In this document: in pieces, positions 6,001 to 64,000 of the stretch
How the letters are laid out: the number at the start of each line of letters is the position of its first letter
Position numbering within the stretch: position 1 is the first letter of the stretch
DNA from: Pocillopora damicornis
Taxonomy: Eukaryota
Direction: 5' to 3'
NCBI RefSeq assembly: GCF_003704095.1
Contig: NW_020847034.1
Location: 62,001-126,000, forward strand
Length of the DNA: 64,000 nt
Notes under the pieces: generated by a model
What the model saw: only the letters and a program-made list of their open reading frames with translations
Database searches by the model: none
What the model was told of the DNA's origin: nothing
Made by a program: the position numbers and the translations under genes

Positions 6001-9000
6001 CATCGCAAACACCAACCTTTTCTCGCGCTCAATGACATCAATGTTCAACCCATTCCATCGATGATTCAAGTCCGTCATTTGATCGTGTACTTCATTAGCT
6101 TGTTCGTTTTCCAGCAAACCACTGTCAATGGCGCTCCTACCCAAGGTGAAAACTTCATCTGCATCTTTTTGCCTGGTTGATGCATCGGTCATTATGTCCT
6201 GAAAACAAAATAGGGAAGTAAGCTTGTGAAGAACACCTGTAACCCTTTGAAATCAGTCCACTGGGATAAACTATCGTCGGTTAAGTGATTTTGCTGCCCA
6301 GCGAGGTATACTAATGACTCGAGCATTTCAAGAGTTATTTGTTTATGATTAATCGCTGCTTATCCAGAAAATCAGCCGAAAATAGTTTGTTTTTATCCAG
6401 AACAGAACACGAGGCAACTCAGTAAAAATTTGACTACCAAATGCAGCCACTAACAAAATTAAATTGTGTCAAAATTTAGCGGCTCCAATTTTGCACTAAA
6501 AAGGCTAGTCACAAACGTATAATTATTGGAACAGAAGTCGTAGTTCTCTTTACCTCATGATCTTCCAAGAGGTCGACAACTTTGTCTAAATTGACCCCAT
6601 GTTCAGCTCCGACTCTGGAATTTCCACGAAATCTGGCGGTGATTGAATGTACAGCATCTTTTAAAGCCTCGAGAATCGACCACTTTCGGTTTTTCTTAGC
6701 TCGCTGAATATCTTGCAGCCTTTCTCTGACCCTGAAAAATCAAGCGCCACTCTGTGTCAAAAAGCAAACAAACAAACCAACAAAAAAATCATCACAAAGG
6801 AAGAATGAATTAGTCTACAAAAGAAGTGGGAATAGGTAGGATTTTTCATAGGATAACGGGTGTCATTTTGTGTACCGTCAAGAAAAGGGGCTGGGAGGGG
6901 GGAGGGCTGTTAAAGGGCCCTGCTTTACTGGTAAACAAGGGATAATTCTGCTGGAAAAGACCGCAAACTTTGTAAGCCGAAAAGGAATAGTTATTTGTAC
7001 TTACATTCTAAGGTTCGCGTTGCACTCATCTACGGTGGGTTTCCACTCATTGTTGTTTTCTCCTCGTTTCTTTGTCAGTTCTGGTGACCTGATCTCCGGG
7101 AGCCGCCTCTCAAAGCCAATCTGTGTCACAAGAGAGGAAATCCGGAGTAGAACAAATTATTAGCCTGGAAACTCACTTTCATCCCAATGTGGAGTGATAT
7201 ATGGTCTTCCCACCCGTCGAAACGTTTAAACCTTCATAGCCTAAAATTATCGCAATTTTCATGTCACCTGTGTCTACCACAACTTCACGCCACATTTTCT
7301 CTGGGACTTATTAACCGAATACTCATGCAGTTGCCGTAAAACGCTCACTCGTTGAGGACAAACTATTTCTCTTTCGAAAATCATAACAGGCCAAGATGCT
7401 GATCACTAGCTTGGACATTTGCTTTTAAGATATCGATACTCTTATTGCGGCTCTCATAAAAACCAAAGCATCGCTAGCGCTCTCACCTCCTTCCCAATAG
7501 CTTCTTGTTCTTTCAGTTTATCTTCTGCTTTTTTCAAAGATTTTTCAAATCGAGCAGATCTGTCATTCCATTCGTCGACTATTTCCTTTTGGTCTTTTTG
7601 AAGCTTGGGAATCTTCTTCACGATCCTGAGAAGACAAATTATAATTTAGAAACGTTGGTGGTACGCAATATTTACACTGAAAAACTGGAAATTTTATATA
7701 GTTAGAACTGTTTTATTTGGAGGGTTAGGAAATAATATGTCTTTTTGATGTGCGATACACTTCTTGTATTCTCTTGAGAGGTTTTTTTAGATTGCCAATC
7801 AATAACCCCCTTTTCTTCCACTACAAAACTAATGACACATCTGAAATGAGTGGGCATGAAATTTCGAGCCGGTTGGTTCAGATCAATTATAAGAACCCTT
7901 AGAAAAACGTTTTTGATTTATTTGCATGCGGTTGACTCTCGACTACGCTAGTGAAATTCATTATCAACTGACTAGAAATTTTAAAAGATTGAGATACTCT
8001 TAGTTCACCTCTGAGGAGGAAGAAGAGAAGGCTGGCTTAGGAATCGATACCAATTTCCGCTGCTAATTGCTTCCAAGTTAATTGTACCATTAATATGAAC
8101 TGAGTGTTAACTGCCAACTATTAAAAGCGTGTCTCTGGCGTGAGATAACCGAAATAAGTTACTAATTTACCGGTCCATACGATCTGTGGCTTTTTCCAAC
8201 ACGTCATCCCACTGTTTTTCGCAGTCCTCTGCGTCTTGTCGAAGAGCTTTGCTTTGCTCATTCGAAAAGTATGGGTCCTTAGATAATCTGTACGCTGTAT
8301 CCGTTGCTTCAGTGAATCGTGGCTCGTAATCATGTAGTCGTTTGGTTAATAGCTGTGGAAACGTTAAAGACTCTGTGAAAGAATATCTGAAGAGAATACA
8401 CACCTACCCCTCCCATAACCAAACATTTATCCAAGATGTAGTCAGTTGACTGTTGTGAAAAGTCGACCGACAGACACTTTCATTGATCCGAATACTAATT
8501 TGTACCTATCTCGTTTTCTTGGTTTGTATTGTAAGTTACAGCTCGAGTTTTAGCGCGTGCGCTTAGGCCACAAACAAAAGGAAAACGTTTTTTTTTTTTA
8601 AATCAATTTTAGGGGCAAGAAAAAAAATGGAAGTGAAAATGATCAACATATGAATAATTCAAATGACATGATGTTTTCTATAATAGATATCTGTATATTT
8701 ACCTTCATGTCTTCTTTCTGTCGTTGTAAAGTTTTCGGATCGTTTCCTATGGGATCCATAGTCTCAATTTCTTTATCCCGAAGTCCAATCCAGTCCTTCA
8801 CTGCTTGTAAGTTAACCCTGCACCCGGTAAGCTCGCCGGCTTTCTGTTGTTCTTTATCCCAAAGCTTCCTTTTTATTCTAGCATCAGATAATTCATAGAT
8901 ATTTTAATCACTAAATCAAGACCTGCTAAGGGCACAACAGGTTAATACGGCTTCAAAACGTGAGTTGACTGCCGCGTCGTCTTCTTTCAGCTTAAAAATT

Positions 9001-9742
9001 AACGAATCGTGGTATTTAATGGTTGGTTTAGAAGTAATGCTCAATTATGCTGATATCTGGACCAAAGCACATACTTCAATTCTGCAGTTCTTTTTTAAAG
9101 TCAGTTATTGCGAGGATCAATTTACCATTTATAATCTACAGTTCAAAAATTTGTCAATTCTTATATCCTTTAAGTTATTCCTTTACCGGTTTTTCTTGAC
9201 ATCTCTATCCGTGTTGAAAGAGCGCCACTGGCCCCTCAACTTATCCATATCTTCGCTGACGTCTTCATGCTGCTTTTCAGATATATGTTTGTCCTTTATC
9301 AGCGCTTCATAGTCTTTCTCAAGATTATCGAACTTTCTTTCGTAGTCAGGAATTTCTTTTTCGAGGCTCTAGAATTATCAAAGAATGAAGATTTCTTACA
9401 CCTCTAATCGCAATTCCTCTTTCGAAAACAGCAATAACAAATTCAAGACATGTTTTACTGATATCAATAACAGAGGAGCAAATTTTGTTGATGACGTTGA
9501 TAATTTAATAACATCGTTAACAAGAATGACTTCGTTAAGTAATCGCGTCAAGTCAAAAAAAATACGATTTAGGGTATAGTGCAAGGTTAGCACTTATTCA
9601 AATTTGCAAATTCATTTAATCTGACTTTGCAATTAGTAAAAGCTCAAAACTCACCACAAAATGGCTTTCTTTGTCTTTAAGAGAAGCAATGGTGTCATCG
9701 TTAGTTTCGTCGGGTAGTTTTTCGTCTTGATCCTTAAGCCAG
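1..9742 (-). CDS. Rod exons: spectrin-type repeats ~19-26; last exon cut by window edge
   Basis: Exons 9655-9742, 9187-9368, 8703-8877, 8171-8352, 7487-7625, 7005-7120, 6554-6731, 6017-6198, 3985-4156, 3489-3670, 2553-2727, 1860-2044, 1276-1423, 727-908, 367-511, 1-175. All in phase. Confidence 0.88.
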
Positions 9743-12700
9743 CTGTGAGAATTGAGTTTGTATATCATTTTTCAAACGTCAACGCTTTTGAAGTCTTTCA
9801 GAACCGTAAAGCAAACTAAACCTAAAAAGTTAAGCCTATTCTTCTCAGTAATTAGCTCTATTCCATGCTTAATTTACCCCCTTTCATCTCATTATCCCGT
9901 CGTCTCGAAACCTTCTAACTTTTAACAAGTCAACTCTCGTGGCACTTTTTAGCACGTAAGGACATATCTAATAAGAACTATTGTGAGAATTTGTGAAGAT
10001 CACAACGGTTTTCCATTGAGATGATTAGTTCGTTGATTCTCGTGCCCTTGACTTCAAATGTAGAGTTTAGGTGTTGGTTATCCTTGGAGCTTAAATGGTT
10101 AAAACCCTATAATCTATATCCAGGTGTAGTACTTACACGCTTATATCGTTTGCGTCGTTTTTCCAATCCTGCAGCCTTCCATCAAAAACAAACGTATCAG
10201 GTTCGGCAGCAGCCTCGACGATGTCTTCGTCGACAGACACGACTACCTCGTCCACGGGAGTGGCCAAAAGGCTGGTTTCCTCTTCCACCTTTGGAATGTG
10301 AGGTAACGGCCCGAGGCTAAACCCGAACCCTTTATTCTACGAGAGAGAAAGAAAAATTAAAGATATTAGTAAGGAAAAAGGTGTTTGAATATAACATACT
10401 AAAAAGATAACGATATAAAAGTAGAGTCGATATTAGATAATAATATCGATATTAGATAAACATTAGATAGAATCTAATGTTTCGTATCCGAAACATTAGA
10501 AGAAAATGTTTGGTTTTTTTTATCCATAATGATAGATCACTCGTGCAAAGGTGCGCTGTGCACTATATAAAAGTAGAGTCGATATAGCTAGGACGTATCC
10601 GAAACATTAGAATAAAACGTTTGGTGTTTTTCATCCATAATGATAGATCATTCGTGCAAAGGTGCGCTGTGCTGTTGTGACCTTTTTCCTGTTGATATTG
10701 TCTTCTTCAGCTTCCGGGACTGATGCAACCTCTTCCATCTTTGGAAGGTGAGGTAACGGCCCGAGGCTAAACCCGAACCCTTTATTCTACGAGAGAGAAA
10801 GAAAAATAAACAATATCAGTCAGGAAAAAGGTGCTTGAATATAACATACTAGTAAGAAAACTATATAATAGTAGAATCGATTGAACTAGGACGTATTCGA
10901 AACATTAGAAGAAAGTTTGTGGTGTTTTTCATCCATAATGATAGATCATTCGTGCAAACGTGCGCTGTGCTGTTGTGACCTTTTTCCTGTTGATATTGTC
11001 TCCTTCAGCTTCTGGGACTGACACAACCTCGTCCATCTTTGGGCTGGCATTTAGTGTAGTTTCCTGTTTCACCATCGGGATGTGAGGTAAAGATCCAAAG
11101 TTTATGAGGAAGCCTTTTTTCTACACGGGAAAGAGTTGCTATATAAAAGGTGTTTTGATAGACGATCGTTAAGAAATAAAGTGGACAGAACTGTGTCTTA
11201 AACATGACAAACAAACGGTGAGTAATTCTCATCAATAGTGACATATCAATAGTAAGAGGATGCGTTGTGTTGCTCTAGCGCTAATGTAAGCTGTTTTCGA
11301 GTCATCTCCGATGCAAATTGCTGAAACTTCAAAAATAGTCTATGACCCTTTTATGACAATTTCCTTAACAGGCGCAGGCCAGTTCAGGCTCTAAAAAAAA
11401 AAAAAGAAACACTTGGCGAGTAATACAAGTAGAAAGAACAAAACGGGCGTAAAACGACCAACCTTTTGTTTTTCTTCCTCCTTCCTTTTCTTTTCGTCTT
11501 CCTCCAGTCGCTTCTTTTCCTCTCTTTCTTTCTTCTTTTTCTCTTCTTCCTCACGTTTTTTCCTTCTCTCTTCCTCCCTTTTCTTTCTCTCCTCCTCCTC
11601 CTTTTTCCTGCGCTCCTCTTGCTCTTTCCTCCGTCTTTCTTGTTCCTCCTTCCGCTTTCTGTTCTCATCTTCTCTCTTCTTCCGTTCCTCTTCTTCTCTC
11701 TGTTTTCTTTCTTCTTCCCTTTTCTTCCGGTCTTCTTCTTCTTTTCTTTTTCTCTCCTCCTGTTCCAACTTCCTCTTTTGTTCTTCTTCTCGTCTTTCTC
11801 TCTCTTCCTCTTCTCTCCTCTGCCTTGCTTCTTCCTCTCGTCTCCTTTTCTCTTCTTCCTCCTTTCGTTTCCGTTTGTCTTCTTCCTCTTTCCTTATCCT
11901 TTCCTCTTCTTCCCTCCGTTTCCGTTCTTCTTCTTCCTTGCGTTTCCTTGCCTCCTCTTCCCTTCTCCTTCTCTCCTCTGCCTCTTTCTTTCTTCTCTCT
12001 TCCTCTTCCTTTCGCCTCCTTTCCATGTCGATTTGCCTCTGTACTTCTTCCTCTTCCAGCATTTTTCTTTCATCTGCCAGTCGTTTTTGTTCGTCTTCTA
12101 ATATTTTTAGCCTGTCTTGGATCCTAAGAACGTCAAATACAACTGTGAGAACACTTTTCTAGAAGAGGATATATTTCAAACTTCCAAGAATTTCAATAAT
12201 TCAAAGACTGAAACCAAACACTATGTTTACCACCTTAACATGATTTTAGGCATAGGAAGTCAGTCACATACAAGCCGATGAATGAAGGGGGTAAGTTTCA
12301 AAAGAAACCGTTGTACTGCGTCGGTGGAAGCTGAAGCGTTAGCCCTTCATCTTCGGCTAACTCGAAACATCTGCTCAGAAACCCTTCACGGTGGCCAATT
12401 TCCGTTATCAACTCATATACAAGGTAAGTTTGCTTAGAATTTTCTCATGCGAGAGTTTTTGGTATTATTTACCCAGGAACCGTTTCCCCTAAATAGAAAT
12501 TTTTTGTAGCTTCTTTAGTTTCTGTAGGATTCTGTAAATCATATTTTTAAGGTTTCAAATATTACTGAAGCCTTAGGTCTTCCTACTGTTACTTAGAAGG
12601 TCAAAAACAAATGCAATTTTTACGAAAACAATACTGTTGATTCAAAGAAGTGGCTGGTACCTGTCATGTCTTGAAGTGGCTGACTCATACAGCCCGTCCC

Positions 12701-15700
12701 ATCTCTCGTGGAGACTTTGCATGTCTTTCTGAATCTTTACCCTCTCTTCTAATCCTACACAAGGCTCCGTTGTCAGCTTATTCCCAAAGTCCGTCATCTC
12801 AGCGAATTTTGGCTGCTCTTGAAGAAGTTCAGTGATCATTGCCTATTAAAAAGAAATAGACCCGATGAGATCCAGTATCTAGTCCCAAAAGCCCTTAATT
12901 CACCATCTCTTCCTCTCTCAGCCACTGTTAGAACAACATAGACTTTTAAGCTCTTCTTTAGAAAAAACATCGTTTACCTTCCGGACAGAGTACAGGAGCT
13001 ATAGTGAAGTTAAATTTTAAACATAACCTGTTTAAAACATTGATAACGCTGTTTTCCATTTAATTTCATTAACTAGTGAACTTGTTCTCACACCAAACAA
13101 TTAGAAAATGCCCCAACCTGTGCGTCTTTTTCTTGTGTTTTTACATAGCTGATGTCGTATCCGATTGGCTCGTGGGACTGAACAGTTGTCTCATTCTTTA
13201 TCAGCCATTTATCAAGGGGATCCGTTTTTTCTGGCCAGAGCTTCATCTTTTCTCCTTGCTCTTTCTCCATTTGCTTAATTTGATCATCCAATCTAGAACA
13301 GAAGCACAACAACATGCTTATTTCTACGGGACATGACAAAAAATGCATCTTCTCCCTAGAGGGGGTCTAAGTAGAAACTCATTCTTTCAAGATCATTGGA
13401 TATTTCTCGGACTTACCCCTCGGGCTAATATCCAAATCGAATACTTTTTTATGGAAAAAAATGCGCACCAGTGAAAGCAATCATCTCTCAAAAAGTGTGG
13501 CTTTATGGTGATTCTCATGAGTACAAATGATAATAGAAAATCTTGAGTTTGTTGTTAGGTTTTCAGTTTAAGTACTTTATTTGGAAAGAGGGAATTTGTT
13601 TGGATATAGCACGATGACATTCCTCATATCAAGTATTTCTCACTACAAGTACATATTAACAGCAACGAACCTGTTTTTTGCAGCCTCCGTTGATGCAAGA
13701 AGTCCTTTATAGCGTTCGATAATGGTAGCTTTTTCATTGTTAACCAAGTTCCTCTCCAAGTCACGCATACTCGGGTCGTTAGTAATCTTGTCTCCAAGTT
13801 GATCTAGCTTGTCCATCTGATTGTCGTGCCGTTTTATTTCTCGCAAAATGTCCTAAAGTGATTTGGAGAAAAAGAAAGATGATCTTTTTATCAAACGAAA
13901 GGCAACACCTAGCACACTAAAATCGTGAACACTACTTAGCAAAAAGATGGGCATTCACAGACCTCAATTTCCTGTCTTTGAGCCCGCGCGTGATCGAGAT
14001 CCGGAGGAGTTACATCTTGAGCTTGCACACGCGCAGAGGTGTCAGATAACCACTTAAGAGTAGAGTTACAAGAGTTCTTCCACTGCCCTAACAAATCTTT
14101 TTGACGTTGTTGTAGGCTGAGATGCTTATCTTCGATTCTGGAAAAGAAATAAACAGAGCTCTTCCATATATAGTTGTCTATTAAATGGACCATTTCACAA
14201 CATTCCTAGTTTTATTTCCCTTACAAACCTCTGTTGTCTCGCGTCAAGATCGAACTTTACTTTATTCCAACGTTTTTTGAAGACTTCAGCCTCATGCTCC
14301 ACAGTCTCCAAATCCTTTTCGGGGACGTCACTTTGGTCGATCAACCAGTCAGAGTTCTTGAGAAAGTCGTCAACTTGTGGATCCAGTACGTTTACAGTTT
14401 TCTTCAGTCTCTGCAAAAATAAGCAAGCTCCATTCACATCGTGGAAACTGAACAACATCTCAAATAATTTGTCCGTAAACAGCACACAACGTATTCTCGT
14501 TTGACCCACCTGAACTTCAGTCTTCTGTTTCTCCAGCGCGTCGAAATCTGGAGCAATTTCCTGCTCACAGACGCTTTCAACTTTCGCAGCCTCCACCTGG
14601 ATTATGTCAAATTGGTCATTCCATCTCGAAAGTTCACCCTCAGTTTTCTCCAAGTTTGTCAGTTGTTCTTCCAATCTGCAAATAAGGATAGAGAAGCTTT
14701 CAAACATTTTGCTAAGTTTTTAGTTATTCTCAGGTGTCTGATATTGAACAGTTGATGCTATTGCTATTCTTTTTAAATAGGGACTATTTACAAATAACTT
14801 CGAATACTCGCTCAGTTTTCCTTCTGAAAAAACATGTTGTGTTGCACCGCTTTGAACTTTTTTGGATCATAACGCAGACGCTCTAAAAGTCCAAAAGATA
14901 AGTCATAAAGTTTCGCTCGAAACATCGCGATAATTTTTCGGAAAACAAGAAACGAGTTCTGACGATGTTTGCTTGCATGCTGTTTAAACGTCAGTGCAGT
15001 TACCCATGCTGGTGGTCATTAATCTTTTCGACGACCCTTTCCCATCTTTCAAGGCGGTCGTCTTTATCGTGCTCCATGCTCTGTTTTGATCTCTCGTCAA
15101 TTACAGGGTCTGCTAGTAATTCGACGGTGAAAGTTTCGAAGTCATCTACTTTCTTCTGCTGTCCAATAAGCTGATTCGTTTTCTAAACATAATAAAAGGC
15201 ATGCTTCGAGAACTCGTCAAAAAGAATGTACTTTTATTAGAATTTTAGTTTGAAGAACATGGAAACTAGGTGTTGTTGTTGTTGTTTTTTTTTCTTATCA
15301 GTAACGCTGTTGAGGGAAATCCGAACTTAATCAGTACAGTTTTGAGTTGCACAGGGTGCAAGAGCCGTGCAGAGGTTGCCTCCCTTTATGAGGGCGTCTT
15401 TGGGGTCTTCCGCTCGTAGATTTGTTTTTGTGATAATAAGGATGCCTGGATCAGGATATCCACCCCCGAGATTGCAGACTCGGTTTATAGCTTGGCGACC
15501 TCTCTCACCAACTCTTCAGCCAGTCAACTACGCCAATGGCACAAACTACATTTTTTTTTAATTAAATCCTCAGTTGATAACAAAACTCATTCGATTCTTT
15601 ATTTTCGATATCGTACCTGGAAATCGTCATATTGTCTTTGAACAGTCTCCAGGTCATCTGCTATTGGCTCTAGCCTCTCTGTTTCTCTCTCTGCCTTTCG

Positions 15701-18700
15701 TAAAAAACTATCGAAGTGATTAACCTTTTCTTCCCACTCATCGAGCTTCTTCCGTCTGTCCCTCTGCATCCTCTTGGAAGCTTCATCAAGTCTTAGATAG
15801 AGAGAAAATGGTAGAAAAAATAGCTAGTCGAAACCATATTTCGGTTATTTTTGAAAACATATGGAAATAGAGATTAAGGAGATCAGTACTGCAATTTTTG
15901 AAGGAAGAATAAAATTTTTAGCAAGGTCTTGAGTTTGATAAACAAGAATAATTTTCAAACTATTTACCAATTCCAACCCAGCCATGTCAGGTAGCTTAGT
16001 ATGGAATACCAGTAAGCCATGCATGTCATTATGAAACAAATAGTAAAGATACATTTGAAAATGTCGTTATAACCTTGAGATATGGACCTACACCTGTATG
16101 CGTCGCATACCTTTCTTTTCTCAAGGCAACAAAATCCTTTATTCGGTCCCAGCGTGCTGTCAAAGAATTGAGATGTTCCACCACCTCATCTTTCCTTTTC
16201 TGGGTAAGCTTGGGATCCTTTTTAACTTTCTCTCCCAAGGCAAGAGTGTCAAGCATTTGAGTTGTGTTCAGTTCCATTTCATTGGAAAATATCTGCAGGG
16301 TAAAGAAACCAGATAAAAATAAATTCTTTCACATTGAAGAAAACAGTTTGGTCACTTGAACAAAACGTATGTGGGCAGTGCTTACAACATAGGCCTTATC
16401 GATTTGAATCAAATTGAAGATGTTCTCCATCTCCAGAGACAACATCTGCTCAATGGCAATCTAGACCGAACAAGACCACGGGACAGCGAAGTCATGTATA
16501 TGAAGAGTTAATCTCTTAAGTGAGTAGAAGTGGAGGTAAATGATTAATGAATGGTTAAAAGCCGACCCTTATGTACCAAACATGTCATGTGTTGCTTTTC
16601 AACAAAACAGTTGTTAGTTGCAGTAAAAATATGAATGTGCTGACCTCAAACGCGTCCTCCTGTCTCCTGACAGTCTCTATGTCATTCCCTATAGGGTCAT
16701 CAATAACAGATATCTGACCCTCCAGTTTATCTAATGCAAGACCCGCTCTTTCTGAGCGAATCCTCCATCGCTCTAAAGCGTCCTGTTCTTGTCGTTCCAA
16801 TTTGTTGAGGTTTTCTTCCATTCTAAAACAAGAAGAAAAAAGAATGCAAGATTTCAACATGTGGTCAATAAATAGCCGCATTCAAATGATCTTCTTCTAA
16901 AGTGCAATATCGTCTAACTGTGTTTAGATGTAGATAAAATTATGCTCCCAACATAATAAACCCTCCGAAGTTCCAGATTGTAACCCTCTACCTTGGGTCA
17001 AGCGAGCCACCAAGTCAGGTGCTAAAGAGTATTATATACAAACATTCAGTTACCTGGCCTGCTTAGCATTAGCGAGATTAACCAGATCGTTCCAATTTTC
17101 ATTACAGATGACAGTTTCCTCGCGGACACCTCGCCTCTCTTCTTCCCCAAGACATGGGTCAGTAACGAGGTTGCCACTGAACTCGTTTAGGTGAGTTACC
17201 TTTTCTTGATAACCTGGAGCGTCTTTGATGATTTCCTTAATTGAAATCAAAACATAGAGTATCAGCACATTCGTTGCTTCAAGTCGCTCATTCTTAGAAT
17301 CATTCGCAAAATTACTCAATCTTAGAATCGTAAGGCCACAGGATTACAGCAAAGAAATTGATGGACAATAAGAGCCTTACGTGAAGAAAGAACCCTAAAA
17401 AGGAAATATTTGAGACAAAACAACAACAACGAGGAGATTAAAAACAACAGCAAACCTGAAAGTCATCTATTTGTTCCAAAGCAGCGTCCACATCGGTAGC
17501 CAGTCTCTGTTGGGCTTCAACCTTAACTCTTGTCTTCACTACCCATCCACTGACCTCATCAAGTCCCTCATGCCATTTCTGGAGCTTGTCCTCTTGCTGC
17601 ATCTTGAGTTTTGAGATAGTGTCGTCAATTCTGTTTGTAAGAGGTTGGCAGAGTGAGAAGAGCTGTCTTATAAAACGTTGAGGAGTCAAGAATTATCTTG
17701 GACCGGTTGCTCCAAGCATACTTTCCGGTGATTTAGANNNNNNNNNNNNNNNNNNNNNNNNNNNNNNNNNNNNNNNNNNNNNNNNNNNNNNNNNNNNNNN
17801 NNNNNNNNNNNNNNNNNNNNNNNNNNNNNNNNNNNNNTTTTAAAAGTCCAACCGGTGTTTTGTTACTCTCAGTTCCTCTGACAATCATTTACGAACCAAA
17901 ATGCATATTACCGTACTGACGAAAAGTGTCTTCAGTTGTCTCAACGGCTCTGAGGTGCTGGGGGGGGACAGTTCTCAAAGACCCCATTGTCAAGTGTTGT
18001 CTGTATTTGATGCTGTTCTCTCGTGGTATGTTTTACTTATTTTCTTATTAATTTTGTTGAATGTTCTTTCGTAGGATCTCTCAGCAGATCTTGTGCAAAC
18101 TGAACCGGAAATGATAAAGACTTTAGACTTCGGAAGAGAGTTAGCATCAAATAAAAATTTGAGCTCTGATAGCCGTCAAAAAGTGGCTGACGATGTGAGT
18201 GATGTGGAAAAAAGATGGAAGACTCTTATGAAAGAGTCTCAAGATGAATACGCTAGGTAATGTTGTTGGCTTGATATGCATTGCCTTTGTGGGTAATATA
18301 AATAGAGTAAAATGAGCGAAAAGGAGAAGAATAAATTGAAAGGCAAGAAAGGATGGATAGTAACATTTTTCTCGAGGGTGGAATAGTGTGTCACAAGCTT
18401 ATCTCGTGAGAATTCGGATGGCGACGTCTTATTATAAAAACCGGACTACAAGTTGCTCTAAAGCTTACAAGGTGAGAGAATCTTGTGAGCAAGTATTGAT
18501 TGACCATAAACATTTACACAGATGCAAGAACGTGTTCATTACTAGAGCCGGTGCTTTTTTTATACAAAATATTTGAAAAGGATACACGATTCATGACTAA
18601 ACGTCTGCTTGTGCTTGTTTCGAAGCGAAAATCAGCGCGACACTGTAGCAAATAAAACCATCACCTCTGGCGAGATTGAATAAGAGATACAGTTCAATGG

Positions 18701-21700
18701 CCATGTTCCATTCTTTCTTTTTTTGCTATTTTAGGCTTGGTGTTGAACTAGGAGCTTCACAAGCTCGACAAAGAAACTTGGAGACCTGGCACGAGCGATG
18801 CGATGATCTTCATGGTTGGGTGACCGACAGATATACAAGGTTACGTTCCCGACCGACTTCTCCTGAAGCATCTTTTGGGGGAATAAAAAGACAACAGAGT
18901 GTTATTGAGGTAAAAATTTTTAGAACGTAGCGTCTCATTTTTCCAGATCTTATGTCGGTTTTTGAAGATGAACCGACAAAAAAATATTTCTACCCCTCCT
19001 GAAAATGATTGTTTCATCTCAAGCAACCTTCCACCCTCAGCACTTTAGAAGATCTCCCCCTCCTCCAATTTTTAGGCACTGGTTAGGGAGGGAGGCTTTT
19101 TCCGTTAAGCTGACCTTAATTTGGTGTTATCGACTGTGCGTTTTCAGGATCTCGTCAAGGACTTAACTTCCAAACAAGGTGAAGTAAACGAAGTTATTGA
19201 CGAAGGAAATCAAGTCATCGACGATCATACTTATGCAGAAAAAGAAAGGAAACTTGTTCATGAGAAGATGACCGCACTTCACGATGATTGGAATAAACTA
19301 GCCACGTTGACTTCCGGTAAACAGCAAAGGTAAGTGTTGAGATTTGTAAGGGTCAGATATCTGTTATTGAGTGATCAGTAAGATTTCGATTCATTTATTG
19401 CTCTTCATCAAATTCAGTGTTTTATAAAAGCCCATAAGGATTGGTGAAAAAGTTTGCTTTACATCCCAGTTCATCAATCGCACTTTACCACCGACATAAA
19501 TACGAGATGGCTTCCGGAAACAACCACTTGTTTTCGTTATCAACTAATCATTCCCACCTTTNNNNNNNNNNNNNNNNNNNNNNNNNNNNNNNNNNNNNNN
19601 NNNNNNNNNNNNNNNNNNNNNNNNNNNNNNNNNNNNNNNNNNNNNNNNNNNNNNNNNNNNNTGCGATCTAATGACTCGGTGACTAGTGGAATATTCCATG
19701 GTATACAACTCAAAGCAATGAATAACTTCCTAGTTCTTACATATACCTACAAGTCTGTGAAATTTATGATTTAATTACCTTGAGCAGGATGTAAGAGCTT
19801 TCAACGTCCTCATTGCTCTCTGCGTTCTTCCCATTCTGAATTTTTTCATCAGCAGCATCCATATAAGATGTCAAGCTGGCACATCTATCACGCCAATCTT
19901 TCATCACCGCTTCCTCTTTCTGTAATGCGTCTAAGCGCTCTCGAATCCTGCAAGAAAAGATCAGGAAACAAAAGTAAAATCTTTAGTTTGGTTTCGTGAC
20001 CGTTCTTTTGAGCACTTAAAAAACCGTTCAATACAACGTTTTTCACCCTTCTCGAACGATGATTGTCGAGGATCCCTTACGTAACCTTGAAACATTAAAG
20101 AATGTGGAAAAAAGGATAACTGGTGCGGTAGGCGTTTACTAAAGTCTTTAAAATGTTATCAACACTCACAAGAGAGTGCGAAACGGCGAAAGGGGTTAGA
20201 TTTCCGCTGGCAATCCTTCATCTTCAAGGGCCGTTTGCATAAACTATTGTTTAGCGTTTAAGTGTGTTTAAAGGTACGTGAGACATATTTAAAACACTTC
20301 CTTTGCCGGGCCAAGGACCGTTTCAAGGGCCGTTTCAAGGGCCGTTTGCATAAACTACAGTTTAGCGTTTAAGTGTGTTTAAAGGTACTTGAGACATATT
20401 TAAAACACTGCCTTTGCTTTGTAAACGAATACATGTACTTCGGACCTAGGAAAGGCTTTTACATTCAGGTTTAATTTGAGACTAAAAGATAATTTACCTG
20501 CGTTCTTGTTCATCGTTGGCTCGCTCCAGTCTCTCCATGTCTCCTCCTAGCTCATTTAAGTCTTGCTTGATGTTAGCCTTGTTTACGTAACTAATGTAAT
20601 CATCCTCCAATAGTTCTTTTCCAAATGCCAGACCGGCATTTATCTCGGGTTTTGATGCCTGTAGTTTGTGACTGCATTCCTGTAATTAAATAGAATGAGA
20701 TGAAAAAAAAATTCATACAAATGGTTAGGAAAAAATTTAGACCTCTGCCAAACTCAGCTGAAATAAGAACCAAACATTTTCTCTCAACAAAGAAAAACTT
20801 AAGGCAAATCCTCAGTACCTTTGACAAAGTGATTTGCTCTTCGGTATCCCCGCGGTCCTTCGGATTCCCCTTAGCTTGTAGTTCAGCCATTTTGTCACCA
20901 CAATCCTTTATCAAAATGTGGATGCGTGTGGTCCGGTTCTTCCACTCTGTGACTTTTTGCTCTTCACCTTTCTGATAAAGAATATCTTCAAGCCTGAAAG
21001 GACATCAGTGAGACTCCATAAGTAATAAATGTGACACGATATTAAGCTCATACGAACTGATAGCGGACCCTGCACAAACAAATAGAGTACATAGAACGTT
21101 AATTGATAAAAAAGGACGTCAACGGTGTGAGGAAAATCACTTACCTTTTTACAAAGTGAATCTCTGTGATGAAAACTCATGAATACCGAAAAACAGCCCA
21201 CTGTATTATATATCATGGAAAGTTTGAACCCGGGAATCAAGATCTGAAACACGGGGCTCTAAACCGCTTGTTGAGCTGCCTCCACCAAAAATACGGTTGA
21301 ATAATTAAAGTGCCATACATTATCGCACCAGGCCTTTATGTAGAAGACGACTTGCTACACTGTATTTATTATAGTTGAAAATTTCGGCCCCAAATATCTC
21401 AAATCCTTTTCGTTGTCGTATAATTAGGTTTTGCAAAGTCGCCTGAAATTGTTATAGATTTTTACCTTTTCTGCTCATCGCCATTAGCTTTTTCTAATTC
21501 TTTTAGATCCTCTTCGATGTGATCCAGGTCCTGTTTGACTTTTGCCTTGTTGTCTTCGTCAACGATATCATCATTTAGAAGCAGCGACCCATATGCAGTA
21601 CCTTCATCGATCACCGGTTTGGCTGATTGCAACTCCTCCTCGAATTCCTACAAAAGTTGAATACACCTTACTGAAAAAGACGCATACAAGTCTCAAAATA

Positions 21701-53454: not shown

Positions 53455-54800
53455 GTCAGTGTTCATAATCCATCAAATAATTTTTCCTTGACACGATGAG
53501 TCTAAACGCATCGCGTGATCTAATATACCCTAGGAAGAGATTATAATCTCTTACCATCAATTAAAACTGGAGACTATCCCCGTGATAAACCTCAAATATT
53601 ATTCTCCGATTTTCGAACATTTCGTCTACCATAACGAAAGTGTTGTTTTAAATTCAATTCAAGATGATAGATCATTAATCCATTGCTGCAGAATAAGGGA
53701 CGCCAGACTGGAGAAAACTGAAAAATAAACATCCACGCAGCAAAATGAAAGCTGTTCGTAAACATTTTGCCTGCGCGTTGAAAGATAATAAATATTATAG
53801 CCTCGAGTTGGCGCGAGAATAATCATGCATATTTTTCATTGGACATGATCTGTTCTTCAACCTCACAGATTTCCAAGAGCTTCGCTCTCTGAAAACTTTT
53901 CGCATCTTGGACAGGTAACATCCGCGTAACTATATGAGTACCCATATGAGGACTATCGTTTATATATCATATGTCATACTGGCGTGCGTGCTTTAGAGTT
54001 TAGTAGCAGCGGCGGGGCACAGTGATATTGACAGAGGACAAGGTTAACAGCTACATTCTTTACGAGACTATCATCTGTATCATGGATATTTCACTAAGAA
54101 TTAAAAAACATCACGTGACTTGACAAGGTCAAGGAACACGGAGTTAAGTATTGACCGATCACTTAGGCGTAAATGCATGTTACAAAACGTAGGTAAAAGA
54201 GAATCTGCGCTTACAGACCAGCAATTCTTTATCGCCCTTTATACATTGTGTACGCTGTTGCCGATGACTGACCCCNNNNNNNNNNNNNNNNNNNNNNNNN
54301 NNNNNNNNNNNNNNNNNNNNNNNNNNNNNNNNNNNNNNNNNNNNNNNNNNNNNNNNNNNAAGTAACGACAGGTTTAATCCGTAGTTGGCGCGTACAGTTG
54401 GTAAACAAAGTAGAGCCTTCGAGTTCTTTCCGAACATCTGTCCAAAAGTGTCTGGCTGGTTTGTTATTCGTATCTTGATAAGCACAAAAGCAAAAAGAGT
54501 TTCGCACGCTAGGTTCGGTTGTAAATCAATTTTCTGTGGTCGAGAAATGAAAGGCGAAAACCGATCCGATAATGGACTTACAACGAAATCGATAAGTCGA
54601 GACGGCGGCTATGGCTGGATAGTCTGCTGTGGGACTTTCATCGTAAGTTTTGTGGTATTCGGAATTCACAACTCATTCGGTGTTCTGTATGTTAACCTGC
54701 TCGATGAGTTAAAACTTGGTGCGATGCAAACAGGTTAGTAATGCAAAGAATTAATTTAACGGCGCGCCACGTGTCGGTACGCAAATTACTGATCCTAAAT
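53455..54800 (+). repeat. Upstream plus exon-1 block duplicated at ~62500-63740 (MCT tandem duplication unit)
   Basis: Colinear blocks, e.g. tgacttgacaaggtcaaggaacacg and agcacaaaagcaaaaagagtttc. Intron 55577-56600 is likewise copied at 58047-60040. Confidence 0.8.
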
Positions 54801-57800
54801 TTTTGATGGGTTCGAATGTTAACGTAGGTGTGCTTGCATTCGATGATATCATTGTAAATACGAGAGCCTTTGAAGCTGACTTGGTAAGTATGTACAATTT
54901 CAACATCGAACGGAGAATTAGCTCTTTTTCATCGTTAACGGAGTGGATTTAACAACAAACGTTAGGATGAAACACTTATCAAACTTAATTGAAACATGAA
55001 TGCTGTTATAATTCACAACTCTGAAAGATTACAAGAGAGTTGATGTCGCAGTGCTGTCTTTCATAAAGAACTATCTGTGTTTCTTGGCTTGTGCTCTACT
55101 TGTAAGTAACAATATTGAGGACATGAGCGACATTAGTTCATGTGATAACCTAACTCACGCCATATAAATAAGAATTTTACTATTTCCCTTCGAGCTAAAA
55201 TTCCATTTCCGTTTTTCACACAATAATTTCTCGGCAATAATTTATGTCCGAAAAGGGTGGATATCAGCACCTGAATTAAGTTTTGTGCATATCGTCTCAA
55301 GTTTCGAGTAAAGCTTCGAAAAAAACACTGGTCTCCTGATTAGAGCACGTGAACTTTCTCTCTCCAAGATCTTTACTGCATTCAATCAAAACAACAAACA
55401 AATACGTCAACGTCTTCGTGCCTAAAAAATTGCAACCTTACCTCTATCGATGATCGCGACATGAGCAAGTAATTACTTCCAAATTTTTTCAGCAGGAACA
55501 AGCTGTTCCTTTGCTGTTTGAAATCATTTTTTTTTTTAGTGTTAGGCTACCAGTTAGCGAAGCAACCGGAAAGTGGCTTCTGTACTGCATATTTCACATT
55601 TTGTCTGCATCACTGATTACAGTCAAAGTTTCTCTGATTTTCCACTTCGCACGTTAGTTGGTACTTTGCAATTTACGGTGTGCCATTAAGAAGGCAACAT
55701 CCTTTCTCTCTAAACGTGATCAACATGGTCACGAGTTGTTGTTTGTTATTTCACTTCTTGCTCAGCCATTACAGGTAGTAACTTTCTTTAACTTAAGTTT
55801 GGAAATATTGGAATACTGTACATTGGCTCACTTTATTTGGAATCGTTTACGGTTGGGATCAGAGCGGATAGAACATAGATTTATTATAACTTTTTCTTCT
55901 TTTTGATGCAAGACAAAATGCTTTTTTTTTTTGTAAAAGGGTTGCATGATCTCGTGGGACCTCAAGTATGGACTCTTTATTGTAGGGTCCCAATGCCGTA
56001 GGTACGGAAGTGATGGTTCTCACGCCTAACGGTTGGTCATTTTCCGGCTCACAGTTAATTTCCGTCCTTTACGATTAAAAGACAAATTTTAACGGCTAAC
56101 CATTTTTGCAAAGAATGGTTAAAATTTGTCAATTTTTACAGCTAACGGCTAAATTTTTTTTGGCCAGTTTACGGCTGACGCAGCCCAAGCACGTGCATAA
56201 TTTGTTTATCATCATAGCGTCAGGGATTGACAGCAAGTTTGGCAGAAGTTTCAACGTCACACGTTTTCGCCTAAATTTTTTTTGATACTGGCTTATACTG
56301 AAACTGTAGAATTTGTGAACCAGGTTTCAGAACTCTGATGCCGGAATGAGTCAATCAGTGCCGGTAGAGAGCGGATTGGCCTGTTTCAAAATTTTTCAAG
56401 AAAAGCGTTATTGGCGTAATTATATGCCCAAAAATCGCAAGACTCGTCCTTGTTTTTTTCTTCAAAATGATGCTCTCTGTTAATAACTGGCAACTATACA
56501 TGGATGTAAAACAGTCGTTGCCGCATTTAACAAATTTGCCTCTGCTTCACGCCCGTGACAAAAAGAATGACATGTTTCTTTATACATGGAGATCATATTA
56601 TTGATTTCTTTTCACAGCGTGGATTGGCGCCATGGCCATGGGTTTGAACTTCTTTTTTGGTCCTATATCAAGTGCATTGTGTGATCGTCTTGGTTGCCGT
56701 GTTGTGTCCTTTGCTGGTGCGTTACTATCCGTCTCAGGGTTGTTCCTAACCTCCTTCATACAAGAAGCTCCTAAAATGTATGTGACCTACGGACTTGTAT
56801 GGGGAGTGGGTTCTAGTTTCTCCTATGTGTCGTCTATCGTTGTCCTGGGTGAATACTTTGATAGACGATTGGCGCTTGCCAATGGGATTGCATCATGTGG
56901 AGGTGGCGTAGGCTCTCTTGTTACCGGGCCGGTCATAAATTACCTACTGGCATCTGTCGGATGGAAACACTCCATGCGCATTTTGAGTGCGTTTGCTGGA
57001 CTTTTATGGATTGCAACTTTGATCTTTAAACCAAAGGAAAATCTTCAATCTACCAGGCAGAGGAGAGAATGTACCAAGTTATTTGATACTTCAATATGGA
57101 AGAGTAAAGCGTACGTTTTGTGGGTTACTACTGTAGCTGTGTTTCAATTTGGTTATCTTGTTCCATTTATTCACCTGGTAAGTTGTATCGTTGTGTGTTT
57201 GATACTCAACAAAACTTCTCATTCCTGATTGGTCAATGAAAAACGCATAAATAGCTTATAGACCGCCGTTCGGGATCTCATAAGAAAATCATCGTTTAAA
57301 TATAAGTTAGGCGGATAAATTCTAAAGCTGACGTTAAAAGCGTATGCCTTATGAAGAATTAAGGGCCACCGCTCAAAACTCTAGCCTTAGAAACTCTCTT
57401 CGCTGGACAATTTACGTTATCCACTCAGTTGATCATTGATCATAAACAAAATTATTTTAAAATTCCCTCCACCGACTCGACACCACAGTTCTTTGTAGAA
57501 TCTTATCACCTTTATTCGTTTCGTTTTTATCTGCAGGTGAGGTATGCCGAAGATTTGGGAGTTCCAAAATCTAAAGGCGCTTGGCTGGTTGGTTTTCTAT
57601 CCATCACCTCAACGCTTGGTCGAGTGGTATTTGGCAAGATTTCTGACTTGAAATTCGTCAACAGGCTCTACCTATACCAATTTTCGATATTTTGCATTGG
57701 AGTGACCACTCTCTTGTGTCCTCTGGTCAAAAACTATGCAGGACTTGTGGGTTATGCTTTAATATTTGGATTTTTTGACGGATGTTTTGTGGGCCAAGTG

Positions 57801-62138: not shown

Positions 62139-62324
62139 TTTAAAAACGACTCTTCGTTGAGTATCTCTGAAGCTGAAACGGCATCTGACTCTGCTTACAA
62201 AAATACAGAATCACAGCCGATGCTGGAAGAGGAGCACATTTTCACCAATAAACTTTGCAAGTTTCACTGCGCTTTAAGAACAAACAAGAAACTTCTTTTG
62301 GTTGAGAGAGAAACTGTCTTATAG
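62139..62324 (+). CDS. 3' part of a terminal exon of another MCT-like copy (...LLLVERETVL*)
   Basis: Near-copy of 61693-61878 with an open frame; begins at the gap edge. Confidence 0.8.
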   Translation, partial: FKNDSSLSISEAETASDSAYKNTESQPMLEEEHIFTNKLCKFHCALRTNKKLLLVERETVL

Positions 62325-63482
62325 TATTTTTAAAGATTCTTAGATTACTGATAGAGCAATTTTCAACTGAGTGTAGAAACTTGTCAAGGATTGCTTTGTT
62401 TTGCTATATTCCGCTGTGTCCTTGGTCCTAAAAACTCGGCCTCTTTTCCAACCAATCAGATGCAAATCTTAAACCAACAGCGACTTCGTCATTCGCGAAG
62501 TGTGTCCATGAAATAATTTTGCTCTGACACGGTGGATCTAAACACATAGTGTTATCGAATATGCCCCAGCAACCAACTAAAACTAGAAAATATCCCCATG
62601 ATAAACCTCAAGGGACATTCCCCAATTTTTGAACGTTTTGTCTACCACAACGAAAGTGTTGTTTTAGATTCAATTCAAGATGCAGAAGAAGGGACATCGA
62701 ACCGGAGAACACTGAAAAGTAAACATCCCAAGCAAAATGACAGCTGTTAGTAAACATTTTCCTGCGCGTTGCTAAATTATTTGAAAGATAATAAATACAA
62801 CGGCCTCCAGTTAACGTTAAAATATGCATGCATATTTATCCGTAAAAATGATCTGTTCTTCAGCCTTGCAGTTTTCCTGGAGCTTCGCTCTCTGAAAACT
62901 GCTCACGACTTGGGAACTTGATATCTGTACGTATTTTCGCGCCTTAAGAAAGCTATAGTTTATTAAATATCATATATCACGTGGACGTACGTGTTTCAGA
63001 GTTTAGTGGCAGCAATGGGGCTCAGGGATATTTTCAGAAGCAAAGGTTAACTACTGCATTGTTTACGTGAATATCATCGATATTTCATCATGATTTCACA
63101 TACATCGCGTGACCTGACAAGGTCAAGGAACACGAAGTTAAGTTCAGACCAATTACTTTATGCGATAACAAAAAAAAGCATGTTAAAAAACGTTACTGAA
63201 ACGTAAAAGATCTGCGCTAACAAGGGATAAAAGTCGACTCAAGTCACACAGCGTGTAACTAGCGTGACGTCACGGGACGTGACGTACGCACAAGTTGAGG
63301 TAGGTTCATTTCGTAATTAGCGCGCCCGGTTGGTAAACAAACAAGTAGAGCAACCAAGTTCTTTCCGAGAAACTTCGCAAAAGTGTTTGGCTGGTTTGTT
63401 ATTTGTATCTTGAGAAGCACAAAAGCAAAAAGAGTTTCACAAGCTAGGTTCGGGTTGCTAATCAATATTCTGTGATCGAGAA

Positions 63483-63669
63483 ATGAAAAGCGAAAACCGA
63501 GCAGATGATGGACTTACAGGGAAATCGACAAGTCGAGACGGCGGCTATGGCTGGATAGTCTGCTGTGGGACTTTCATCGTAAATTTTGTGGTATTCGGAA
63601 TTCACAACTCATTTGGTGTTGTGTACGTTAACCTGCTCGATGAGTTAAAACTTGGTGCGATGCAAACAG
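63483..63669 (+). CDS. First coding exon of a further MCT-like copy (MKSENRADDGLTGKSTSRDGGYGW...)
   Basis: 187-nt paralog of 54547-54733; donor G|gtaagc. Confidence 0.85.
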
Positions 63670-64000
63670 GTAAGCAAAGAGTTCATTTAGCTGAGCGCCC
63701 GTGCCGGTATGCAGAAGTTACTGATCCATAACTTTTGATGGGTTACTAGTGTCTCTTGGCTTGAGGCTTATGAATTCTCTATTGATACTGAATAGTTATA
63801 AGTAAGATTCAGGATTTATTATATAGATACTGATGAAATACCAGGATAATTCTTTTTGCTAAAAAATCATATCTTCATCGCGTGCGGTGAAGATACTATT
63901 TGTTATCTTTCCCGTGTAATGATATTGGTGTCGCCATGGTTACTAACCTGATTAGCCAATTACAAGATAATTATGGCGCCTGAGCTTCCCGCTCAGGCGC

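Follow-up and report, generated by a model that had tools for sequence, protein, structure and literature searches.

Non-repeat insertions in spectrin-like rods occur in dystrophin and utrophin, whose hinges H1-H4 interrupt the rod as short, proline-rich and flexible segments. The insertion analysed here also interrupts a spectrin-like rod, in a gene of a stony coral, while it differs from these hinges in that a long predicted helix precedes a short acidic stretch containing Pro and Gly. In addition, the C-terminal region of dystrophin is absent from the contig that carries the coral gene. Another long charged alpha-helix next to spectrin repeats is the central rod of plectin, desmoplakin and BPAG1e. 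That rod is a heptad-based dimeric coiled coil, whereas the coral segment shows a charge period of 8 residues and has almost no hydrophobic residues.

The other close relatives are the ER/K single alpha-helices (SAHs). The central helix of caldesmon is an ER/K tether between two ends of the protein, and it shares with the SAH of INCENP and with the coral segment both a comparable length (150-200 residues) and the ER/K composition. The SAH of INCENP is likewise reported to tether two protein ends (PMC4571873). The host proteins of these two helices are without spectrin repeats, while the coral helix lies in a spectrin rod. The SAHs of myosin-10, myosin-6 and myosin-7a resemble the coral segment in that they are rich in E, R and K, have dense opposite-charge pairs at i,i+4 and i,i+3, and are free of a hydrophobic seam. 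Placed between two functional parts, they serve as constant-force springs or semi-rigid levers (PMC4183817, PMC5378345). On the other hand, these myosin helices span ~40-100 residues after the IQ motifs of a motor, while the coral helix has ~200 residues, continues from a spectrin-repeat helix and is located in the middle of a rod of ~30 repeats.

Among elastic protein linkers, the two kinds studied best are spectrin-repeat rods and ER/K single helices, and so far they have been treated as separate solutions. Among the searchable papers we have found none that joins an SAH domain with dystrophin or with spectrin repeats, the sole CSAH/spectrin match being unrelated. While the ER/K motif and the spectrin rod are each known, their combination and the conservation of its length appear to be new.

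The ER/K exon and its neighbours

The window is the whole stretch of 64,000 nucleotides that was analysed (C3669:62001-126000), and positions are given in it unless a contig is named. On its minus strand, an exon of 661 nt is found at 12123-11463, bordered upstream by ...ttcttAG and downstream by GTtggt. It consists of one base plus 220 codons, of which the first ~15 encode residues like those of a normal first-half repeat exon and the rest make up ~20 blocks of the form E4(R/K)4. The first base completes an AG|G Arg codon, as the preceding exon ends with ...SATSRHD + AG at 12661, and the final base closes a full codon. The peptide begins with IQDRLKILEDEQKRL, after which the E/R/K blocks follow. 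This start resembles those of other first-half repeat exons of the gene, for example LDDQIKQMEKEQGEK at 13292. The initial annotation had described an exon with ER/K blocks and no Pro or Gly in a spectrin rod, starting like a normal first-half exon in phase 2. Its coordinates proved to be exact, and the AG/GT borders, the 220 codons, the absence of Pro and Gly, the comparable starts IQDRLKILEDEQKRL and LDDQIKQMEKEQGEK and the phase 2 end of the upstream exon all agree with that description.

In the rod, first-half exons measure 166-175 nt (1 mod 3) and second-half exons 179 nt (2 mod 3). Since the length of the ER/K exon is also 1 mod 3, it falls into the same phase class as a complete first-half exon, and skipping it alone would shift the frame. 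Within the window, the two remaining sense frames of the exon contain 3 stops each. The peptide of 220 residues contains E85 R55 K43 Q11 D8, so that E+R+K amount to 83%, and it has no Pro, Gly or aromatic residue. Its charge totals are 93 for E+D and 98 for R+K, giving a net charge near zero.

Statistics of the charge pattern were calculated on a piece of 189 residues (query 11556-12122), with the pairs counted in its core of 169 residues. The charges are anticorrelated at lag 4 (autocorrelation -0.83) and correlated at lag 8 (+0.81), which gives a period of 8 residues. Opposite charges occupy 126 of the i/i+4 pairs, and like charges only 5, compared with 64.6 +/- 5.6 in 2000 shuffles of the same residues; the charge pattern is far from random. 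Written in rows of eight, the sequence appears as ~20 E4(R/K)4 units with two single-residue shifts of register. Hydrophobic residues number 10 in the 169 of the core and form no heptad seam, the period being 8 and not 7. A composition dominated by E, R and K, alternating blocks of ~4 acidic and ~4 basic residues, and the absence of both helix breakers and a heptad seam are the marks by which an SAH is recognised, and all of them are found here. Overall, the sequence supports the view that the exon is real coding sequence and that its peptide has all the sequence features typical of an ER/K single alpha-helix.

At the DNA level, a period of 24 nt is detected by TRF with matches of only 63-76%, similarity among the 8-codon units is 56%, and the tract uses a mixture of GAA/GAG, AAA/AAG and AGA/AGG/CGN codons. 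Judged by this degree of divergence, the tract is not a young DNA repeat.

The ER/K exon stands between the halves of ordinary repeats. Upstream lies the second-half exon of the preceding repeat (…EQPKFAEMTD…SATSRHD + AG) at 12661-12839 on the minus strand. It has 179 nt, ag/gt borders and a phase 2 end; it matches Pfam Spectrin (E 4e-5) and ten clusters of exon-sized ORFs that are 85-100% identical. Downstream, three tandem copies of a linker exon follow on the same strand. Copy 1 (KKGFLINFGSLPHIP…NINRKK) lies at 10980-11120 and is a candidate 141-nt phase 0-to-0 cassette exon with the acceptor tag| and an in-phase AAG|GTCACA donor; counterparts of it were not found in the orthologous loci L015, L016 and L021. 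Copy 2 (NKGFGFSLGPLPHLP…NINRKK) lies at 10682-10786 and is a candidate 105-nt cassette exon, also phase 0-to-0. Compared with the orthologous locus L012, it shows seven substitutions in 105 nt and an indel of 111 nt just downstream. Both copies are without the resumed repeat, and because of their acceptors and the in-phase AAG|GTCACA donor they could be in-frame cassette exons. A word search with the linker exon for spliced fragments preceding 'NKGFGF' has returned genomic ORFs only.

Copy 3, at 10137-10336 (minus strand, 200 nt, ag / GTAAGT), contains an acidic stretch of ~50 residues with Pro and Gly (…VDEVVVSVDEDIVEAAAEPD…), after which the repeat resumes with helix A, GRLQDWKNDANDIS. The resumed repeat, GRLQDWKNDANDISV and then WLK..., is spread over 10336-10137 and 9742-9658, the latter being an 85-nt ag/gt exon on the minus strand that holds the rest of the interrupted first half-repeat (WLKDQDEKLPDE…DKESHF). 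Together these two exons have 285 nt, or 0 mod 3. The second-half exon of the interrupted repeat follows at 9187-9365 (minus strand, 179 nt, Pfam Spectrin E 2e-5). From this anatomy of the resumed repeat (10336-10137, 9742-9658, 9365-9187), the insertion is located after ~15 residues of a repeat-linking helix. The earlier claim that the tract is inserted inside a spectrin repeat is thus borne out, with ~15 normal first-half residues before the blocks and the resumption downstream. It had further been stated that the repeat resumes three exons later. The resumption itself stands (10336-10137, 9742-9658), while the count of three exons is doubtful, because the orthologues of the two other lineages (five loci, among them L015, L016 and L021) have a single linker exon and the three tandem copies are found in Pocillopora (the window and L012).

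Conservation, selection and traces in RNA

Orthologous loci were reached via exon-sized ORFs called on coral genomic contigs in protein libraries. A large HMMER search with the ORF at 14198-14719 returned exon-sized genomic ORFs only, and no full-length models. The more distant exon matches P0024 and P0034 were left out, as their contigs end short of the ER/K position. In six orthologous loci, which represent three deeply diverged coral lineages, an ER/K exon is found at the same place and in the same phase. It has 661 nt in L012, a Tara Pacific scaffold ~98% identical to the window, as in the window itself; 697 nt in L015 and L022 (L023 is nearly the same as L022), both from ENA metagenome assemblies, and in L026 from a Logan assembly; and 676 nt in L016 and L021, again from ENA metagenome assemblies. 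A comparison of the presence and length of the exon across Anthozoa had been proposed at the outset as a check, and its outcome for corals is positive: the exon occurs in three coral lineages at 661, 697 and 676 nt, with no indels within a group.

In all six loci the exon comes directly after the conserved '…SATSRHDR' exon and has preserved its AG and GT borders, and the intron between the two measures 450-540 nt in L012, L015 and L016. The three lengths are all 1 mod 3. The ER/K frame is the only stop-free one in all six loci, the other sense frames having 2-9 stops, and Pro and Gly are absent from all six peptides of 220-232 residues. The autocorrelation at lags 4 and 8 was computed for L012, L015 and L016, and is the same there. 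The six peptides can be aligned almost gap-free over the first 195 columns; among the ungapped columns, 117/218 are identical and 169/218 keep the same charge class. A search of the own genome has found no paralogue of the exon at E 1e-5. A word search with the 189-residue piece returned low-complexity look-alikes only, and such a blank means little for ER/K sequence, because the near-identical 231-residue ORF of L012 went unlisted as well.

Between the lineage groups, synonymous sites are saturated and the amino-acid identity is 67-73%. Between L016 and L021, the ER/K exon shows a dS of 1.4, a dN of 0.047 and a dN/dS of 0.034; all 225/225 codons are aligned with no indel, and the differences at the three codon positions are 15/11/75. 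Similarly, L015, L022 and L026 give dN/dS values of 0.05-0.07 and no indel in 232 codons. For comparison, the flanking spectrin exons have dN/dS values of 0.02-0.11, and the linker exon reaches 0.29 (L016 vs L021). Between the window and L012, the ER/K exon differs at 13/617 sites, approximately the rate of the upstream intron (12/521), so that constraint is visible only at longer distances and at the amino-acid level. Considering the exact length within groups and the variation of only 12 codons between groups, selection acts on the length of the tract besides its sequence. By the same codon-level measures, the exon is not a chance purine tract.

Traces of the locus were also looked for in sequencing runs. 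We have found 22 runs that hold part of the window at 9000-14800, ten of them recorded as RNA. Expected shares were calculated as the 31-letter words of 9000-14800 that are present in spliced mRNA, with exon borders set by ag/gt. The expected share is 0.325 for a model with the ER/K exon, 0.216 without it, and 0.358 with the ER/K exon and two extra linker copies. Nine runs from four studies (five recorded as RNA and four guessed to be RNA) show a share of sampled words of 0.32-0.33, a total that does not tell which words a run holds. These shares give an indirect hint in favour of the inclusion of the ER/K exon, and leaving out linker copies 1 and 2 improves the fit slightly.

A predicted single-helix spacer and its alternatives

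With the single-exon piece of 189 residues as input, AF2 predicts one helix over residues 2-188 with a mean pLDDT of 93.9, although AF2 tends toward helices on a single highly charged sequence, and does not separate a monomer, a dimer and a fluctuating helix. The predicted helix takes in the 'normal' first 15 residues, which agrees with a continuation of the helix of the preceding repeat. With a rise of 0.15 nm for each residue, the 220-232 residues correspond to a predicted helix length of 33-35 nm. A sequence search of the PDB with the ER/K piece has found only two unrelated charged helices.

Based on the above analyses, the most probable reading (probability roughly 0.72) is that stony corals have a giant actin-binding rod protein built of spectrin repeats, and that this exon is an obligatory coding part of its gene, encoding a predicted, length-constrained single-helix spacer or spring. 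On this evidence and the single-exon fold, the last helix of one repeat would run unbroken into ~200 residues of E4(R/K)4 blocks, and these blocks would fold alone as a single alpha-helix of ~30-35 nm stabilised by salt bridges. The acidic Pro/Gly stretch of ~50 residues behind the helix may be a flexible joint, after which the next repeat starts. The stability of SAHs arises from i,i+3 and i,i+4 Glu-Arg/Lys pairs, and the 97-residue SAH of myosin-10 unfolds at forces under 30 pN, shows no peak in doing so and then refolds, as a constant-force spring does (PMC4183817). By analogy, the coral segment, placed in series with the spectrin repeats, would be both a fixed-length spacer and an element that extends at low force: at rest, the helix of 33-35 nm would set a fixed reach, and under load it could extend toward ~80 nm before or alongside the unfolding of repeats. 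Its length and charge register would be maintained by strong purifying selection. Here we infer translation in vivo, a monomeric state of the helix in solution and a mechanical role of the segment, whereas the anatomy of the exon, its charge pattern, its conservation, the selection on it and the predicted helix are direct results of the analyses.

The conservation data also suit a different function, in which the segment, while still helical, would serve mainly as a charged binding surface for microtubules, nucleic acid or another polyelectrolyte. This main rival is unlikely in our estimation. It draws on the fact that the sequence itself is conserved, with 54% identical columns and an invariant register over ~195 columns, and that dN/dS is as low as in the folded repeats. 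Precedents exist as well, since binding to microtubules is reported for the SAH of INCENP (PMC4571873) and binding to DNA for the KER helix of CAF-1 (PMC10335832). Yet the net charge of the coral segment is near zero (93 E+D and 98 R+K), unlike that of basic microtubule- or DNA-binding helices, and the strict conservation of length suits a ruler at least as well.

It is considerably less probable that the segment is an intrinsically disordered polyampholyte that works as an entropic linker. Very low complexity and the near absence of hydrophobic residues would fit such a linker, and the AF2 model is based on one sequence. Against this, blocks of four with strict opposite pairing at i/i+4 are the very pattern that stabilises SAHs (PMC4183817, PMC5347031), none of the six orthologues has a Pro or Gly in its 220-232 residues, and a segment that were only a disordered spacer would not be expected to keep its register from lineage to lineage. 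We give still less credit to a two-stranded coiled coil that would dimerise the rod in the manner of the central rod of plectin or desmoplakin. A long uninterrupted helix does adjoin spectrin repeats here, and SAHs are reported to have often been mis-predicted as coiled coils (PMC4571873), but 10/169 hydrophobic residues, the missing heptad seam and a period of 8 rather than 7 argue against it. Finally, that the stretch is purine-rich non-coding or rarely used DNA, its open frame being a by-product of composition, is close to refuted: purine-rich DNA is poor in stops (only 3 in each of the other two sense frames) and the divergence from L012 equals that of the intron, but six loci of three lineages, with synonymous sites saturated, have retained the frame, the phase, the splice sites and the length class, the codon-position differences are 15/11/75 with dN/dS at 0.03-0.07, and skipping of the exon would shift the frame.

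If the reading as a single-helix spacer is right, an ER/K helix of 30-35 nm in series with ~30 repeats, codon-exact within lineages, would be a test case for the tuning of tether reach and force response. Such a case would further demonstrate purifying selection on a sequence of very low complexity that matches in strength the selection on folded domains. As for genome annotation, such ER/K exons should not be masked or dropped.

The host gene

The initial annotation had pointed to dystrophin as the host gene, an identity that the evidence does not show. CH-domain exons lie at 38393-32461 of the window, and a tandem-CH head followed by a spectrin-like rod, the N-terminal arrangement of dystrophin and utrophin, is indeed present. 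In PDB matches, however, these CH exons show about equal resemblance to the actin-binding domains of alpha-actinin, beta-spectrin, plectin, utrophin and dystrophin. The half-repeat exons continue to the start of the window and on to C3669:58246, where the last spectrin-like ORF is found, and an unrelated, tandemly triplicated gene comes after it. In total, the rod comprises ~30 spectrin repeats, roughly 16-18 before the insert and ~12 after it.

The C-terminal WW / EF-hand / ZZ region of dystrophin and utrophin was looked for through the dystrophin-type EF-hand_3 (PF09069), WW and ZZ not being searched separately. PF09069 has no match on C3669, and its matches in the genome are confined to C203 and C2884, of which C203 carries a CH exon besides its EF-hand_3 exons. 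As for spectraplakins (MACF1 / dystonin / Shot), their C-terminal GAS2/GAR domain (PF02187) is absent from C3669 and matches only C2697, C2744, C3822 and C3883. SYNE1-type repeats (PF25034) have matches on C1766, C2697 and C203, and none on C3669. The KASH domain (PF10541) gives no match in the genome, where the controls are also silent, and a regular expression for a PPPX-stop tail finds none on C3669, its controls being silent too.

Since the CH matches are about equal and the matches of the dystrophin EF-hand, of GAS2 and of SYNE1-type repeats lie off C3669, the gene would best be called an unclassified giant tandem-CH spectrin-repeat protein. The label is corrected in this sense, and the gene is not to be called dystrophin on present evidence. 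A further-reaching proposal, which we consider conceivable but somewhat doubtful, is that stony corals possess a fourth giant actin-binding spectrin-repeat protein, which is neither dystrophin nor nesprin nor spectraplakin and would contain a built-in ER/K spring whose length (220-232 residues) would be fixed and, together with the charge register, selected as a ruler or force buffer. Such a hybrid mechanical linker would be without a described counterpart among spectrin-family proteins. The look-alikes in the atlas are generic spectrin clusters and MSP300/SYNE1-type clusters, and the best outside match of a flanking repeat exon is located on C203, with 35% identity and an E value of 5e-4.

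Probable duplication of repeats and a triplicated linker exon

We have observed that four consecutive spectrin repeats of the rod gene, at 24837-20497 of the window (minus strand), are encoded by clearly related exon pairs, with second-half exons that start with, for example, ECKEELEAAKP, DCEDSLTNTEP, EFEEELQSAKP and LQECSHKLQASKP. As the exon pairs of successive repeats are so clearly related, their sequences suggest that repeats in this part of the rod were duplicated locally, in tandem.

In Pocillopora, the linker exon 3' of the ER/K exon, together with part of its upstream intron, forms a tandem triplication (window 11120-10136, minus strand; 13500-14500 of L012, the Tara Pacific scaffold ~98% identical to the window), while each of the orthologous coral loci L015, L016 and L021 has only one copy. 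Copy 2 differs from L012 by 7 substitutions over its 105 nt; immediately downstream of it there is an indel of 111 nt. Judging from the sequences, the substitutions and the adjoining indel may reflect gene conversion among the linker copies.

Linker motif, ER/K frame and a simple tract

The linker after the ER/K helix has a conserved acidic-hydrophobic motif, VDE-V/M-V/I-V/L-S-V/I/F-DE-D/N (window 10250-10200; L015:11850-11900; L016:11690-11730; L021:14720-14770), which resembles short motifs of the SUMO- or LC3-interaction type.

In L012, a 231-residue ER/K ORF (12685-13380) is recorded as a called gene in the sequence collection. It was absent from the word-search matches though the 189-residue query is nearly identical to it, that is, the word search has a blind spot for low-complexity proteins. 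In the orthologous gene of L021, an intron contains a simple tract of ~650 nt (18262-18944), probably a microsatellite-like expansion, in which one reading frame gives runs of Met/Arg and another gives runs of Glu/Asp/Gly.

Other genes and repeated DNA

Another contig of the same genome, C203, has on its plus strand a CH exon at 73.8 kb, SYNE1/dystrophin-like repeats between 83 and 103 kb and, at 114.8-115.4 kb, exons encoding EF-hand_3. This region (C203:73784-115440) is likely the true dystrophin orthologue of Pocillopora damicornis.

Immediately downstream of the rod gene, three paralogous units are arranged in tandem (C3669:56003-44583, minus strand), each with ORFs containing '...YHAALCGGCSFDGL...' and '...RYGQSN.F...' motifs. 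Repeated or duplicated DNA occupies 62200-64000 and 54300-54900 of the window and recurs on many contigs: an element of ~150-180 nt at 63815-64000 has dozens of genome-wide copies (80-93% identical), and the window also contains longer duplicated segments, whose copies share 86-91% identity.
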